In this document: in pieces, positions 6,532-64,000 of the stretch
Position numbering within the stretch: position 1 is the first letter of the stretch
Layout: each line of letters starts with the position of its first letter
Assembly (NCBI RefSeq): GCF_006345805.1
Contig: NC_043023.1
Location: 15,438,001-15,502,000 of the forward strand
Source of the DNA: Octopus sinensis
Lineage: Eukaryota
Length of the DNA: 64,000 nt
Reading direction: 5' to 3'
Made by a program: the position numbers and the translations under genes
Notes under the pieces: model-generated
The model's input: the letters and a program-made list of their open reading frames with translations, nothing else
Databases searched by the model: none
Told to the model about the DNA's origin: nothing

Positions 6532-7740
6532 CTATGGTTTGTCCCCTGTATTAATGCATTTGTGTCTATTTAAGTACCTCTTCTGAGAGAATGATTTACC
6601 ACAGATATAGCACCGATATTGTTTCTCACCTGTATGAACTGATTTGTGAGAATCAAGGTAACTTTTTTGAGAGAATGACATTCCGCAGACATCACATTGA
6701 TGAGGTTTCTCTCCTGTATGAATATATTTATGAGAATCAAGGTTACTTTTTGAGAGAATGATTTTCCACAAATATCACACTGATATGGTTTCTCACCTGT
6801 ATGAATGTATTTATGAGAATCAAGGCTACTTTTTTGAGAGAATGACATTCCACAGACATCACATTGATGAGGTTTCTCTCCTGTATGAATGTATTTGTGA
6901 GTGGTAAGGCTACTTTTCTGAGAGAATGATTTACCTCAAATATCACACTGATTTGGTTTCTCTCCAGTATGAACAGATTTGTGATAAGTAAGACTACTCT
7001 TATGAGAGAATGATTTTCCACAAATATCACATCGATATGGTTTCTCTCCTGTATGAGTGGATTTGTGAGAAGAAAGGTGACTTTTTCGAGAGAATGATTT
7101 ACCACAGATATCACGGTGATAAGGTTTCTCCCCTGTATGAATGTATTTGAGAAGTCAGGTGAATTTTTCGAGAGAATGATTTTCCACAGATATCACAGTG
7201 ATAAGGTTTCTCTCCTGTATGAGTGGATATGTGTCTAGTAAGGTTGCTTTTATCAGAGAATGATTTACCACAAATATCACAGTGATAAGGTTTCTCTCCT
7301 GTATGAATGGATTTCTGAGAAGAAAGGTGACTTTTTCGAGAGAATGATTTTCCACAGATATCACAGTGATAAGGTTTCTCTCCTGTATGACTGGATATGT
7401 GTCTAGTAAGGTTATTTTTATCAGAGAATGATTTACCACAAATATCACAGTGATAAGGTTTCTCTCCTGTATGAATGTATTTGTGAGAAGTAAGGTGACT
7501 TTTTTGGGAGAATGACTTTCCACAGACATCACAGTGATATGGTTTCTCCCCTGTATGAATGGATATGTGAGAAGTAAGGCTGTGCTTCTGGGAGAATGAT
7601 TTACCACAGTGATATGGCTTCCTACCAGCATGAATGAATTTGTGAACAGTGAGATTTCGCTTATTAGAAAATGTCTTTTTACACATATCACATTGGTGTG
7701 ATAATTTTTCTTTTTCTTTTGTCATCTCTTGAGGATTCAT
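6532..7740 (-). pseudogene. Chimeric C2H2 ZNF (B-type head, A-type tail), ~14 fingers, two frameshifts
   Basis: Starts MNPQEMTK and ends [18 protein letters not shown]. There is a 2-nt deletion near 7150, a 1-nt loss in an A-run near 6750, and a 9-nt deletion removing a Cys in finger 2. Confidence 0.85.
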
Positions 7741-9270
7741 TATTGTTCTATAGTATACAAACACAAAATATAATTTTGCCTCCTTTTTTATATATTTCTA
7801 TTGCTTATATTTCCAGCAGTCCCGATCTTCATCAATATCTGAAGATGATACAAACACCTTTGCAGATATCTCCCGCTCCAAACAGAATGTGAAATACTTT
7901 AGCAAATATTCCAGGCAATGATGGAAACAAATGTTGCCATCAATTCAGAAGAAATATTTCACAGTTTTCCACCATAGACAAATCATATAAACAGAGTTAT
8001 GTCAAATATTTATAACTTCTTCCATTAGGTGATCAATATTCATGAAGTGTCACTAACATTTCACCTCCTGAAATGACACAGAAACAGAAGAAGATATAGG
8101 AAAAACTTAAAAAGCAGAGATTCAACTATTAAAAAAAATATAACTACATCTTCAAAATGATAAACTGTGGATAAAATCCTTCAATTTGTCTTTGTAATTT
8201 ATTTATGGTAATTTATAATATGGTAACCCTTTTGTTACCATATTTCTTTTGAGATTCAGTGTGTTTCTTTCAATTATTTTAAATATAATAAAGAATTTAG
8301 TAAACTTAGTTATCATTCAACTAGTGTTGGCAACATAAATTGTAACTAAGGTTTCGTGGAAGATTTTAATTCAAAACTTATGAAAACAAGACATTTTACC
8401 ACAGAGCCAGAGCCGGTTTGGGCCGGGTTAGTAACAAAAGGGTGTGGTCTTTGAAATTTATTTTATTAAAATTATATGATACAACCTTGTGTAATGTCTA
8501 CATATAGACGGACTTCAGTTCCTCTTCCTTCAGATATTATGTAAAACATTATCCCTTTAGTGTTCAGATTATTCTGTTAAATGTAATTCTTTTTCACTCA
8601 AATTGTTTTGAATTAATCATGCAATATCTTATAGCTTTTAGGTTTCAATGATGTGATTGTTTATTTCTAGAATGTCAATGTAGGTTAGTGTGAGGGGCCA
8701 GATACCGCCAGTTTGAATATAAAACATGCAGAATATCTGGGCCTGATATGGCCGGTTTTAAACAATAAAGGGTTCAACTATAGGATATTGGACAATAATA
8801 TGATAAGTGACTACTGTTTAACCCTAGGTATCCCTGACTGAGCAGATCTATTATTAATGAAATTAGGTAATGTTCATGATTGTTACAACTTCTGTAACAG
8901 ATCAAACATAAACATAAACTACAATTTAGTGAACCAACCCATCATGACTTTCCTCTGGTAACTTTATTAATAATAAAAACAAAACTGCACTCACATATGT
9001 TGAAGGTGTGGTCACTAATTTAGAGAAAGTGTTCTGTGAATTGACATATGAAGAGTAGAGCCAGGACAGAATGGCGATCCTTCGGTATAGGTACACACGT
9101 GACTTTGTTTACATTTCTGAAGATAACATAAACCCTTTTCTCCCACCCCCCACCCACATATAAAAAAACACCTTTTTGAAATGTATCCGGTACTTCCGGA
9201 TGTACACCGGTACTTATACCGTAAGATCGCCTTTCTTTTTAAAACAAAGTAAATAAAACACAAACGCATA

Positions 9271-9336
9271 GGTACTACTAGCGAAGACTGGACCCGGTAC
9301 GCGCTAGCTAGTCGTAAGTAGTCGATCCTACAACGA
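9271..9336 (+). mobile_element. Single terminus of a GGTACT-type (Merlin-like) MITE
   Basis: Near-identical to the left end of the two-ended copy at 21787-22401. Truncated at the palindrome junction. Confidence 0.6.
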
Positions 9337-9817
9337 AAATTTTAGGAAAAAAGTAAATAAGTAAGAAATAACTGCAAAATTTTACCGATGAATGTGTTAA
9401 ATTATAAGGCACAAAAAGAAAATGACTCTCCGCAGACACAACAGAATATGCTTCAATACACGAATTCATATAAAGAACCTTGCAAACCAAATCCAAAAAC
9501 GAAATAGAATTAATATCTGTTTCTTTATTACCCACAAGGGGCGAAACACGGACGGGACAAACAAGGACAGACAAACGGATTAAGTCGATTACATTGACCC
9601 AGTGCGTAACTGGTACTTAATTTATCGACCCCGAAATTCTATTTCGTTTTTGGATTTGGTTTGCAAGATTCTTTATATGTATTCGTGTATTGAAGCATAT
9701 TCTGTTGTGTCTGGGGAGAGTCATTTTCTTTTTGTGCCTTATAATTTAACACATTCATCGGTAAAATTTTGCAGTTATTTCTTATTTCTTACTTATTTCC
9801 TTTTTTCCTAAAATTTT
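9336..9817. repeat. Inverted repeat (arms 9336-9510 and 9636-9817) with a partial SINE as spacer
   Basis: aaaattttaggaaaaaag...gaaatagaat pairs with attctatttc...ctttttcctaaaatttt. Confidence 0.9.
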
Positions 9818-61347: not shown

Positions 61348-62559
61348 GAAATTTGTTCTCTAATTTTGGTAGGGATTCAGCAATAATAACAAGATCATCA
61401 GCTTGGAAGAGATCCCAAGGGCAGCCAATCTTACCAACCACTCATCTCTCCCTAGCTTCTCTATTTCTCACCAAAGTCCAAATGCAAAGATATATCTTTG
61501 ACCAAGTACTTCTGCTTTTGCCTCACCAGGAAGATAGCATTGCTGGTGCTTCTACTTGATACAATTCTACACCTTGATCCATGGAACTTACATTTATATA
61601 TGAGGAGACCTATTGAGTCAAGTACATTAACATCAAAAAATCAAATGGAAATTGTAGTTGTGATACCTGTGCCGGTGGCAAGTAAAAAGCACCATCCGAA
61701 CATGACTGATGCCAGCACCACCTTGACTGGCTTCCATGCCGGTAAAAAGCACCAACCGATCATAGCCGTTGCCAGCCTTGCCTGGCACCTGTGCTGGTGG
61801 CATGTAAAATGCACCCACTACACTTACGGAGTGGTTGGCATTAGGAAGGAATTTAAGATTGGCTGCCCTTGGGATCTCTTCCAAGCTGATGACCTTCTTA
61901 TTGCTGAATCCCTACCAAAATTAGAGAACAAATTTCAGGTTTGGAAGCAAGATCTGGATTGAAAAACCATACAGTAAATTTAGCAAAGACCAAAGACAGA
62001 GATGGCCCTGCTCGGCATGTAGAAAAGATGTCAGGAGAAACTCCATGTAGTGTACCCAGTACAAGATATGGACACATATTGTTCATTTGATTATAGGCTG
62101 GAGATTGTGGGATAGCCTAAGCATGTCCAGCAGAGAACAACTGATCATCGTTGGGAACTGGAATGTGATACAATGGTGTCGGAATAATATATCCACAAGA
62201 AAACAGCAAATTAATGTAATTAAAATTGCTTGATTGAAAACCACACACATCATAATTAATGAGTTGATGCAAATGAGGAAAATGTAAAAAATTTATTTGT
62301 CTCAAAAAAAGTAATACAATTGCTGTATTTTATTCCCCATTTTATCACTGGTATTGTTATTGATCAATATGAATAAATACAGGTTTAGTTAAATTACGTT
62401 AAGAGAATGATTTTGCACAGATAACACAGCAATATGTCTTCTCTCCTGTATGAATGCATTTAAAATTAGTTAAACAACATAATCCTAAGAGAATGATTTA
62501 CTACAGATATCAAAACCAAAAATCAAAGTCATAATCGATCAACATCAATGGAATTTGTA

Positions 62560-62822
62560 GCTGTGATACCAAGGCCGGTGGCACATAAGTGAACCATCCG
62601 AACGTGGCCGTTTGCCAGTTCCTTCTGGCACCTTTGCCGGTGGCACGTAAAAAGTACCCACTACAATCACGGAGTGGTTGGCGTTAAGAAGGGCATCCAG
62701 CTGTAGAAACACTGCCAGATCAGACTGGAGCCTGGTGCAGCCTTCTGGCTTCCCACACCCCAGTTGAACCGTCCAACCCATGCTAGCATGGAAAGTGGAC
62801 GCTAAACGATGATGATGATGAT
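62560..62822 (+). mobile_element. SINE S3 in the decayed ZNF tail
   Basis: Ends in (gat)n at ~62820. Confidence 0.75.
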
Positions 62823-63131
62823 CACAGTGATACAATATCTCCCCCATCTAAGTGGATTTGTGATAAAAATATTTTCTCACGCAGAATGACTTACTGCAGA
62901 TATTACAGTGCTTTCTCTCCTGTATGAATGTATTTGTGATTAGTTAAATATTGTTCCACAGACAATGATTTGCCACACCTCTTACAGTGAAAGGGCTTCT
63001 CTCTTGTATGAATACATTTATGAGTATATATAGCACATTCCCAAGAGAATGATTTACCACAGATATCACAGTGACATAGTTTGTCTCCTTTATGAATAGA
63101 CTTAGAATGATTTACTGCAGATATCACAGTG

Positions 63132-64000
63132 CTATGATTTCTCTCCTGTATGAATGTATTTGTGTCTAGTAAGGTTACTTTTTCCAGAGAATGATTTACC
63201 ACAGATATCACATTGATATGCCCTCTCATCAGTGTGGGTACGTTCATGAGCAGTTAAATAACTTCTTAATACAAAGGATTTACCACATATATTGCAGTGA
63301 TATTGTTTCTCTCCTGTATGAATGTATTTGTGTCTATTAAAATTACTTTTATGAGAGAATGATTTACCACAGATATCACACTGATATGGCCTTTCATTAG
63401 TGTGAGTAAGTTCATGAGCAGTTAAATTACTTCTCACTACAAAGGATTTACCACAGATATTGCAGTGACATGGTTTCTCTCCTGTATGAATGGATTTGTG
63501 AGAAATAAGGCTACCTTTTTGAGAGAATGATTTACCACAAATATCGCAGTGATATGGCTTCTCACCTGTATGTTAGTTTGTGAGTGGTTAAATAACTTTT
63601 TAATGAAAAAGATTTATTACAGATATCACACTGATATTGTTTCTCTCCTGTGTGAATATATTTGTGAGAAGTAAGGTTACATTTGTGAGTGAATGATTTA
63701 CCACAAATATCACAATGAAATGGCTTCTCATGAGCATGAATAAGTTTGTGTTTAGTTAAAGAACTTCTTATTGAAAAGGATTTATTACAAATATCACAGT
63801 GATGTGGTTTCTCTCCTGTATGAATGTATTTGTGAGAAGTAAGGCTAGTCTTTTGAGAGAATGATTTACCACAAATACCACACTGATATGGTTTCTCTCC
63901 TGTGTGAATGTATTTGTGATAAGTAAGGCTAGTCTTTTGAGAGAATGATTTACCACAAATACCACACTGATATGGTTTCTCTCCTGTATGAATGTATTTG
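63132..64000 (-). pseudogene. 3' part of a third-type C2H2 ZNF running in from the right edge; 2-nt frameshift near 63572; decayed fingers continue to ~62400
   Basis: Finger frame is open from 64000 to ~63575. aactaacatacagg versus aactaacacatacagg at 11562. Stop EKS* at 63132. Confidence 0.8.

Follow-up and report, generated by a model that had tools for sequence, protein, structure and literature searches.

A tandem and inverted cluster of poly-C2H2 zinc-finger genes and pseudogenes in Octopus sinensis

Genes and pseudogenes of the cluster

The 64-kb stretch of Octopus sinensis DNA analysed here, called the window below, contains about ten paralogous poly-C2H2 zinc-finger genes and pseudogenes, arranged as a tandem and inverted cluster. 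There are 146 canonical C-X2-C-X12-H-X3-H fingers in it, and when degenerate and dead fingers are included, 187 units of 84 nt are spread over ten loci, G1–G10. Of these, about four appear intact, another two are truncated, and a further four are pseudogenes or fragments. A family gene has one coding exon, in which a charged N-terminal peptide of 16 residues is followed directly by 16–25 TGEKP-linked fingers. The absence of a visible effector domain, pointed out in the earlier note, was confirmed: none is detectable, Pfam returns zinc-finger families only for the window genes, and the ATG used for them aligns with the start codon of an annotated O. sinensis homologue.

A conserved block of ca 450–480 bp, identified by alignments, precedes every ATG. 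It is found, for example, at 29150–29598 on the plus strand, and equivalent blocks lie before the ATGs at 7740 (−), 10452, 19933 (−), 23701, 39703 (−), 43991 and 53653. The block is closed by a polypyrimidine-AG motif, TATACTATAG, 8 nt before the ATG, and is homologous to DNA upstream of an O. sinensis gene; the head and the promoter-proximal DNA of the family correspond to the N-terminus and upstream DNA of O. sinensis XP_036366877.1. Interspersed repeats in the window are 80–92% identical to loci of O. vulgaris and O. sinensis, and no record of the proteins from the window was found elsewhere. From its sequence, the cluster apparently lies in the genome of an octopod and belongs to an expansion specific to that lineage.

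Clades were defined by the non-coding 450 nt upstream of the genes. Clade A (G2, G6 and G9) is 94.6–95.0% identical in this region and clade B (G1, G3, G4 and G7) 95.7–97.1%, while the identity between A and B is 80–83%. In clade A, G2 (10452–12596, plus strand) is an intact ORF of 714 aa with 25 fingers, after which dead fingers run on in frame to 12845. G9 (53653–55314, plus) is also intact, with 553 aa and with out-of-frame and dead fingers beyond the ORF, up to 55955. G6 (37742–39703, minus) is a close collinear copy of G9, in which a frameshift at ca 38486 cuts the ORF to 408 aa (38477–39703) and leaves the later fingers and the dead tail out of frame. G8 (51066–52218, plus) has no head; it is an A-type fragment that keeps an A tail, and in front of it lies a repeated element (49641–51094) that is ca 96% identical to 34281–35736.

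In clade B, G3 (18461–19957, minus) has 17 fingers and a TTG in place of the family ATG at 19933, the next Met being codon 6. G7 (43991–45629, plus) has 19 fingers, the last of which is out of frame through a 2-nt deletion. G4 (23701–25323, plus) is a pseudogene with two in-frame stops and one partly deleted finger. G1 (6112–7764, minus) was identified by six-frame reading, painting against the other loci and unit mismatches as a chimeric pseudogene with at least two frameshifts and an in-frame stop. Of the remaining loci, G5 (29599–30987, plus) is an intact ORF of 462 aa with 16 fingers, and G10 (62909–64000, minus) is partial and frameshifted, belongs to a third lineage and has its head beyond the window end.

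Alignment shows that the family shares a TAG stop: where a normal finger starts with CCA TAT CAC TGT, the stop reads CCA TAG CAC TGT (for example at 12591–12596, plus). Since it is common to the A, B and G10 tails, this stop is ancestral to the family. An A-type dead tail with ca 2 kb of 3′ flank is attached to G1 (4568–6534, minus). By self-BLAST and a five-way alignment, copies of it were located after G2 (12594–14560), G6 (36030–37993), G9 (55533–57498) and, in part, G8 (51796–52891), with pairwise divergences of 2.6–5.4%.

Repeated finger blocks and divergence of the arrays

The earlier note described finger blocks that recur in distant paralogues and different contexts. The repeated blocks themselves are real; each was found at its place, also at the DNA level with ca 95–98% identity. 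This is far beyond chance, because unit pairs from different genes have a mean identity of only 72% and a 99th percentile of 91.7%. The (Y/C)SLTHH block is located at 10830–11165 in G2 (units G2.04–07) and 54115–54450 in G9 (G9.05–08), with 8 mismatches in 336 nt (97.6% identity). The SQR(S/T) block is found at 23995–24162 in G4 and at 44453–44620 and 45041–45208 in G7 (95.8% identity), and the SQLGDLTRH block at 19304–19387 in G3 and 24817–24900 in G4, with 4 mismatches in 84 nt. A fourth block, a two-finger pair, is shared by G2 (11418–11585, G2.11–12) and G10 (63553–63720, minus, G10.04–05); the copies are ca 95% identical when aligned with a gap, and the reading frame of G10 shifts where the pair ends. 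The ends of the arrays are likewise as described. The first finger, SNKGNLTVH or a one-residue variant of it, is present in all eight heads, and the B-type last finger, SCLRSLTSH, is identical over 84 of 84 nt in G3, G4 and G5, the G7 copy having 4 mismatches and being out of frame.

What does not hold is the distance between the genes involved. The first three blocks join sister genes of one clade with their order kept, and the non-coding flanks of these gene pairs are 95–97% identical. The divergence of the blocks, 2.4–4.8%, is that of the dead, unselected fingers behind the shared stop (2.4–5.2%). The repeated blocks were thus mostly inherited in order from recent gene duplications, not swapped between distant genes.

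The array middles were found not to be shuffled either. A collinear chain holds 81 of the 87 near-identical finger matches (at most 5 mismatches), 106 of 118 reciprocal best matches are collinear, and permutation gives P < 0.01 for the collinearity of G2–G9, G6–G9, G3–G4, G4–G7 and G2–G6. With nearest neighbours picked by protein similarity, the synonymous divergence of fingers is 0.06–0.10 for A–A, 0.11–0.16 for B–B and 0.23–0.35 for A–B pairs, and the A and B heads differ by 0.23. At synonymous sites, cross-clade fingers have thus diverged as far as the heads, so that general exchange between distant paralogues is not supported. A few cross-clade fingers (for example G2.02 vs G4.04 and G7.06) have 0–1 synonymous differences where ca 4 are expected; the number of such pairs is about what chance gives. 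The finger genealogy, which the earlier note had named as a check on its proposal, is largely congruent with the gene clades, with G1, G5 and G4 as recombinants.

Most differences between the arrays come from three sources: tandem duplication, in place, of blocks of 1, 2, 3 or 7 fingers; loss of fingers; and substitutions at the DNA-contact residues. In G2, ten nearly identical fingers (CYMSSLDSH/CYTSTLDSH) form a tandem array of 10 × 84 bp (11586–12425, plus; TRF period 84), in which neighbours differ by 0–5 nt and any two copies by at most 7. G7 carries a 7-finger (588 bp) duplication (44285–44872 and 44873–45460, 11 mismatches), G5 an internal 3-finger (252 bp) duplication (30313–30564 and 30565–30816, 4 mismatches), and G9 one of 168 bp with 3 mismatches. 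Of the 187 units, 46 have a copy within their own gene that differs by no more than 2 mismatches.

Substitutions are concentrated at helix positions −1, +2, +3 and +6, with pN/pS of 1.41 at contact positions vs 0.35 in the framework and linker, which is under purifying selection. Neutral evolution at contact positions had been named in the earlier note as evidence against its proposal; as estimated from the counts, the value of 1.41 is not significantly above 1, and these positions evolve about neutrally or slightly faster. The head is indeed nearly invariant, as had been noted, and recent duplication explains this, its pN/pS within the window being 0.5–0.67, a weak constraint. Finger 1 lacks one zinc ligand in all three A-clade genes.

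Recombinants and alternative explanations

Recombination between paralogues is real but occasional, and was found in G1, G5 and G4. G1 is a hybrid with a B-type upstream region and head, followed by diverged B-like fingers, a G7-like core (units 10–11) and an A-type tail. The crossover lies inside one finger, G1.13 (6619–6702, minus), where a codon-by-codon comparison reveals an in-register junction of G7.10-like and G2.23-like sequence between codons 7 and 14, at ca 6660–6680. Differences from G2.23 are confined to codons 1–7 and 27, and those from G7.08 to codons 14–27 plus one synonymous difference at codon 5. In G5, both ends of the ORF and the 3′ flank resemble clade B, and upstream of ca −45 the sequence is only 83–84% identical to either clade; this foreign upstream region identifies G5 as a recombinant. 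In G4, position 9 is occupied by a second finger-2-type unit that is not collinear.

These hybrids are an argument for the model of the earlier note, in which a library of fingers is moved often between distant paralogues and exchange outweighs descent as the source of diversity. It could also draw on the core shared by G1 and G7, which has a single mismatch over 168 nt in a surrounding stretch of 93% identity, on the similarity of the G2 and G10 pairs despite the separate lineage of G10, on array middles that are more diverged than their flanks, and on the common occurrence of possible donor pseudogenes. However, with ca 90–93% of the matches collinear, the first three blocks confined to sister genes at the neutral divergence, cross-clade fingers as diverged as heads, low-pS cross-clade pairs in about chance number, and neither acceptor/donor asymmetry nor dedicated machinery seen in the window, we consider this model quite unlikely. 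The chimeras and frameshifts all come from one assembly, and mis-joined or collapsed 84-bp repeats and 2-kb flanks might have produced them, since copies that are 95–100% identical over kilobases are a known source of mis-assembly and the window proteins have no record elsewhere. Such an artefact is nevertheless very unlikely: the G1 junction is in register inside a finger, with diagnostic substitutions on both sides and unique sequence on each side, and the frameshifts examined in the cluster are 1–2-nt deletions outside homopolymer runs. Nor would it account for shared blocks in collinear order or for the division into clades.

Another option is that the genes are as old as their middles and that gene conversion has homogenised the 5′ and 3′ flanks, in which case the constant ends would overstate the recency of the duplications. 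In clade B, position-aligned units in the middle have pS of 0.18–0.40 and nearest neighbours 0.11–0.16, with flanks at 3–5%; the A-type 3′ flank, at 1–3% along most of its 2 kb, varies less than the 5′ flank of the same type (ca 5%); and the within-clade pairwise distances are star-like. Against this, the divergence between G6 and G9 is low and even from the flanks through the array (middle pS 0.048), which is what a simple recent duplication would give, and every within-clade pair has mid-array islands of collinear near-identical fingers. In-place duplication and loss already explain non-orthologous units at aligned positions, and terminal repeats are in any case expected to be stable in arrays that evolve by unequal exchange. 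Concerted evolution of the flanks is thus unlikely as the overall explanation. Loss of orthologous fingers accounts only partly for the gap between middles and flanks in clade B, and the excess may reflect homogenised flanks or fingers imported from family members outside the 64-kb window. In the window, 22 units have no relative within 9 mismatches.

Taken as a whole, the tandem cluster is of an ordinary kind, though highly dynamic, and we judge it probable that it evolves by birth and death, with the blocks co-inherited by recent segmental duplication, and is not a cassette system. The family ancestor already carried the TAT-to-TAG change at the start of a finger, and recent whole-gene (segmental) duplications passed on the shared blocks in order. 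Blocks of 1–7 fingers were duplicated or deleted within the 84-bp array, probably by out-of-register recombination or replication slippage; with the unique ends anchored, the termini remain constant and the middle varies. Neighbouring paralogues were occasionally joined in register, by non-allelic recombination or gene conversion, into the hybrids G1, G5 and G4, and amino-acid substitutions are concentrated at helix −1, +2, +3 and +6 with the framework under purifying selection.

Relation to known systems

Nothing indicates the cassette-diversification system that had been suggested. As in trypanosome VSG, Neisseria pilE/pilS and chicken immunoglobulin pseudogene donors, pseudogenes adjoin intact genes, the conserved ends might serve to guide recombination, and there is at least one short tract that looks like conversion. 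In contrast to them, the window has no evident single locus acting as expressed acceptor and shows no asymmetry between donors and acceptors; the blocks are collinear and as old as their flanks, and there is no sign of somatic or programmed transfer. PRDM9-type arrays are similar in that an 84-bp coding array forms a minisatellite, the ten G2 copies differing mainly at helix positions. They are different in that the window genes have no PR/SET, KRAB or SSXRD domain, and constitute a multi-gene family with mostly heterogeneous, not homogenised, arrays instead of a single locus.

The proposed parallel with vertebrate KRAB-ZNFs fits well, as the conserved ends, variable middles and general behaviour of the cluster are like those of KRAB-ZNF clusters. 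Poly-zinc-finger expansions are known to involve finger gain and loss, gene conversion and positive selection at positions −1, 3 and 6 (PMC2604467). Vertebrate KRAB-ZNF clusters share with the window tandem and inverted paralogues, whole arrays in one exon, TGEKP linkers, whole-finger duplication and deletion, occasional gene conversion, many pseudogenes, and change at contact residues with a conserved framework (PMC2604467). The window genes differ in having no KRAB, SCAN or BTB domain, only the 16-residue N-terminal peptide, in their mollusc host, and in the ancestral stop of the whole family with dead fingers behind it.

Large octopus-specific expansion clusters have been described among cephalopod C2H2 genes (PMC12513265), with which the window shares an octopod-like context, many-fingered tandem genes and the homologous head. 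The papers examined treat these expansions at the gene-tree and expression level, and finger-level array dynamics, the shared stop and the chimeras were not found in them. The FiNZ-ZNFs of cyprinid fish are likewise a large lineage-specific poly-ZNF family of tandemly duplicated genes with a short charged N-terminus, no classical effector and adaptively evolving fingers (PMC10547256). Their head has 28 residues, compared to 16 here, and they belong to an unrelated lineage.

The window proteins are most likely sequence-specific DNA binders with fast turnover of specificity. Co-evolution of ZNFs and transposable elements has been reported across metazoans, octopus included (PMC10547256), and repression of transposable elements has been demonstrated for FiNZ-ZNFs. 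By analogy with the latter and with KRAB-ZNFs, a candidate role would be the recognition of transposable elements or other fast-evolving targets.

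The cluster, its flank clades and the dead fingers

The window is AT-rich (GC ca 35%) and contains 146 canonical C-X2-C-X12-H-X3-H fingers. When degenerate fingers and those lying behind stop codons are included, 187 units of 84 nt are obtained, distributed over ten loci called G1 to G10. The H-TGEKP-Y/F linkers are conserved in the unit consensus and TRF gives a period of 84 in every gene, such that the loci show the tandem fingers, linkers and 84-nt period of Krüppel-type poly-C2H2 genes. Pfam finds zinc-finger families alone at these loci (in G9, zf-C2H2 with E = 2e-97 and zf-H2C2_2 with E = 1.8e-133), and tRNA and Rfam scans of the window gave no match.

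Three of the loci are intact, namely G2 (10452-12596), G5 (29599-30987) and G9 (53653-55314), all on the plus strand. G6 (37742-39703, minus) and G7 (43991-45629, plus) are each truncated by a 1-2-nt deletion, while G3 (18461-19957, minus) has lost the family ATG, which reads TTG. The pseudogene or fragment class consists of G1 (6112-7764, minus), G4 (23701-25323, plus), G8 (51066-52218, plus) and G10 (62909 to beyond 64000, minus). Look-ups for exact matches to the proteins of G2, G5 and G9 had no result. Long ORFs that overlap the arrays in a different frame or on the opposite strand, at 11464-12537 (minus), 44460-45035 (plus) and 53702-54319 (plus), were also considered, but they are by-products of the stop-poor 84-bp repeat and not genes.

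Eight of the loci carry a head, that is, an N-terminal peptide followed by the first fingers, and in all of them ca 450-480 bp upstream of the ATG are homologous. The identity over 450 non-coding upstream nucleotides was used to define two clades. Clade B is composed of G1, G3, G4 and G7, with identities of 95.7-97.1%, and clade A of G2, G6 and G9, with 94.6-95.0%, while the identity between the two clades is 80-83%. The beginning of the window (1-549) resembles the A-type upstream region, with 96% identity to 9732-10287 and 94% to 39868-40408, and is oriented as it would be for a gene on the minus strand. This indicates that another member is located just left of the window and that the cluster continues in that direction.

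The tails end in a stop that does not vary between A, B and G10, where CCA TAG CAC TGT replaces the finger start CCA TAT CAC TGT. Since the stop is common to all tails, the family stems from one ancestor bearing this nonsense mutation. Behind the TAG, the A-type genes have three or four in-frame finger units, called dead fingers here (6112-6534, 12594-12845, 37742-37993, 51796-52218 and 55533-55955), which are 95-100% identical between copies. The window thus carries its own neutral yardstick, namely the dead fingers behind the common stop codon.

Age and order of the shared finger blocks

The earlier note proposed that finger blocks are shared as a mosaic library between distant paralogues. 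The blocks themselves are real, as each was found at its place and is near-identical in DNA. The identities are 97.6% for the G2/G9 block, 95.8% for the G4/G7 block, 95.2% for the SQLGDLTRH finger of G3 and G4 and ca 95% for the finger pair of G2 and G10, against a background in which between-gene unit pairs have a mean identity of 72% and a 99th percentile of 91.7%. Also borne out are the first finger common to the heads, present in all eight, and the shared last finger of the B types, whose copies in G3, G4 and G5 match at all 84 nt. However, the first three blocks each fall within a single flank clade, and their partners are therefore sister genes rather than distant paralogues. A convergent origin of the identical helices was rejected, because the sharing reaches into synonymous sites and dead fingers as well.

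The dead fingers differ by 2.4-5.2% between copies and the blocks by 2.4-4.8%. As the two divergences are the same, the blocks have precisely the age of the gene duplications.

The order of the fingers is also informative. When up to 5 mismatches were allowed, 87 one-to-one unit matches were obtained, of which 81 fit a collinear chain, and shuffling of the unit order yields P < 0.01 for G2-G9, G6-G9, G3-G4, G4-G7 and G2-G6. A limit of 10 mismatches gave 118 reciprocal best matches, and 106 of these are collinear. The middles of the arrays, previously described as shuffled, have thus kept their order and differ by insertions, deletions and duplications.

We now consider the genealogy of the fingers. 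To guard against selection bias, the nearest relative of each finger was picked by protein similarity, and synonymous differences were counted only at codons for the same residue. The resulting pS values, which are of the NG86 type and rough, are 0.06-0.10 for A-A, 0.11-0.16 for B-B and 0.23-0.35 for A-B comparisons, the last to be set beside 0.23 for the heads of A versus B. This grading by clade means that the finger genealogy follows the flank clades and is largely congruent with the gene clades. A few cross-clade pairs have 0-1 synonymous differences (unit 2 of G2 with unit 4 of G4 and unit 6 of G7), and about three in fifty are expected by chance. A programmed cassette-diversification system would show a finger genealogy in conflict with the flanks and a mosaic, non-collinear order of donors, and the window displays neither of these two features.

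Remodelling within arrays and recombination between genes

Several duplications in place can be recognized. One in G7 comprises seven fingers (588 bp, 11 mismatches), one in G5 three fingers (252 bp, 4 mismatches) and one in G9 168 bp (3 mismatches), and in G2 there is a run of ten 84-bp copies with 0-7 mismatches. Overall, 46 of the 187 units are matched by another unit of their own gene with no more than 2 mismatches. These in-place duplications postdate the duplications of whole genes. Fingers are also lost, and only about half of the B-clade units have kept an orthologue in a sister gene.

The G2 run (11586-12425, plus) consists of near-identical fingers reading first CYMSSLDSH and then CYTSTLDSH, with an unusual Cys-Tyr at the helix start. 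If functional, its target would be a DNA repeat of ca 30 bp with a 3-bp period.

For 145 intact units connected by a minimum spanning tree, pN/pS is 1.41 at helix positions -1, +2, +3 and +6, 1.12 in the variable helix and 0.35 in the framework and linker. The contact value is far above that of the framework but, by our own estimate from the counts, not significantly higher than 1.

The contrast between ends and middles is the least well explained point. Between sister genes the identity is 93-99% in flanks and terminal fingers, whereas the best match of the array middle reaches only 84-92%, and in position-aligned units of the B genes pS is 0.18-0.40 in the middle compared to 0.07-0.16 at the ends. 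G6 and G9, a simple recent duplicate, have a middle pS of 0.048. In tandem arrays under unequal exchange, the edges are anchored while the inside turns over fast, and on this general ground we read the constant ends as ordinary behaviour of such arrays. Two other scenarios are conceivable: homogenization of the flanks could make the ends appear constant, and fingers could have been imported from family members outside the window.

Recombination between paralogues is real but takes the form of isolated events, with a pseudogene as the outcome in two cases out of three. G1 is a hybrid, which has B-type upstream sequence at 7676-9400 (94-99%), a diverged B-like part at 6920-7600 (84-92%), a stretch with 99-100% identity to G7 at 6668-6920, and an A-type tail with 3' flank at 4568-6580 (96-100%). 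The G7-like part is collinear over 519 nt at 93%, and its 168-nt core, with one mismatch, has the appearance of a short tract of gene conversion. The B-to-A junction is found in unit 13, where codons 1-7 are of the G7 type and codons 14-27 of the type of unit 23 of G2, which makes this a crossover in register. The A-type 2-kb 3' flanks differ by 2.6-5.4% among G1, G2, G6, G8 and G9, compared to ca 18% between the A and B upstream regions, so the tail of G1 is not simply ancestral. The tails of G1 and G9 are almost the same, which might be taken to prove that a transfer happened very recently. This argument is weakened by the fact that the 3' flanks of the A type all resemble each other at 96-99%.

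In G5, the upstream region is 82-84% identical to both clades, while the head (95-98%) and 3' flank (92-97%) are B-like, and the affinity switches ca 45 nt upstream of the ATG. G4 has a second unit of the finger-2 type at position 9. A clean fusion of two genes was downgraded in this case, since the unit preceding the misplaced finger resembles unit 11 of G5 and not a head.

One can also ask whether in-register recombination between neighbouring octopod paralogues, pseudogenes included, is a quantitatively important source of arrays, with the conserved head acting as an octopod-specific functional module similar to FiNZ or KRAB. The three recombinant loci out of ten are compatible with an important role of recombination, but a single window gives no rate, and we consider this combined proposal improbable.

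The head and the relation to known systems

The head is composed of a charged pre-finger peptide of 16 residues, an atypical finger 1 with an AG(R/E)KP linker and a CDVC finger 2, all conserved in O. sinensis. Its identity between genes equals that of the adjoining non-coding DNA, and its pN/pS is 0.5-0.67. Moreover, each of the three A genes lacks one zinc ligand of finger 1, by replacement of the first Cys by Ser in G2 (10500-10577) and of the last His by Asp (HKCID) in G6 (39578-39661) and G9 (53700-53778). For these reasons, the conservation of the head within the window needs no special function.

Searches with full-length proteins are dominated by vertebrate poly-ZNFs of a generic kind, with ca 50% identity, and gave no relative from the same species, while the head alone yields a specific relative. 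An exhaustive search with it gave Octopus sinensis XP_036366877.1, with 61% identity over 85 aa, in an alignment that runs from the pre-finger peptide through finger 1 into the CDVC finger 2. The DNA upstream of the XP_036366877.1 gene aligns with the upstream block of the window and the ATGs coincide, although the window genes lack ca 27 nt after the ATG relative to it. In this homologue the N-terminus is encoded in the same exon and the CDS begins at the aligned ATG. The coinciding ATGs support the assigned start as the true one and argue against a hidden upstream exon encoding an effector. An upstream coding exon, considered because of the AG located 8 nt before the ATG, is unlikely on the same grounds, although an unannotated exon far upstream is conceivable. 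Two further ZNF genes, ca 10 kb apart on O. sinensis CM016876.1 (L002 307-885 and 10001-10495), have a head of the same kind, with a charged peptide and a CDICKK or CDICTK finger 1, which indicates that the head marks a subfamily represented in more than one octopus species.

Large lineage-specific C2H2 expansions are established in octopuses (PMC12513265), and the present cluster is best filed among them. The earlier note was right that no effector domain is visible, Pfam giving only zinc-finger families: KRAB (PF01352) has no hit in G5 or G9, and PR/SET (PF00856, PF21549) none in the window proteins. Of the parallel drawn to KRAB-ZNFs, the behaviour of the cluster stands, yet without a KRAB domain it falls outside that family. 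It is likewise distinguished from PRDM9-like proteins by having no PR/SET domain. With the FiNZ-ZNFs of cyprinid fish, which have a 28-aa N-terminal sequence, there is an analogy only (PMC10547256).

Poly-ZF expansions have been described as gaining and losing fingers between recent paralogues, undergoing gene conversion from time to time and changing adaptively at positions -1, 3 and 6 (PMC2604467). The window offers a finger-resolved view of array remodelling in a non-vertebrate poly-zinc-finger cluster and reveals no new mechanism. The processes of mammalian KRAB-ZNFs, that is, gene duplication, duplication and loss of finger blocks, occasional hybrid genes and fast change of contact residues, also run in an octopod family without a recognizable effector domain, which supports that such dynamics are a property of the tandem finger arrays themselves. 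All of these results refer to one 64-kb window of one assembly.

Across metazoans, octopus included, ZNFs have been proposed to be linked to transposable elements (PMC10547256). Some further features of the window are given here. The 371-aa ORF at 3197-4312 (minus) contains a CCHC knuckle (CYKCGLRGHIRAFC), has tails rich in lysine and glutamate and resembles gag; neither a Pfam domain nor, among 5.8 billion proteins, a homologue was found for it. Non-ZNF interspersed repeats, probably SINE-like, at 26025-26421, 27331-27724, 47885-48290, 57918-58317, 60561-61348 and 62574-62823 show 80-92% identity over 230-430 bp to loci of O. vulgaris (GCA_951406725.2) and O. sinensis (GCA_006345805.1), which places the window in an octopod genome. 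Downstream of G5, a tandem repeat of 101-bp units (31273-31711) has 4.3 copies with 94% matches. An inverted repeat of 536 bp (59862-60397 and 61468-62000, 97.6% identity, ca 1 kb apart) could represent transposon ends or a recent inverted duplication, and a similar inverted pair (40318-40962 and 41272-41901, 95%) is located between the head-to-head genes G6 and G7. Finally, an element of 1.46 kb is present in two copies with 96% identity, at 34281-35736 and 49641-51094. The latter adjoins the truncated 5' end of G8, and the element may thus have removed the head of this gene.
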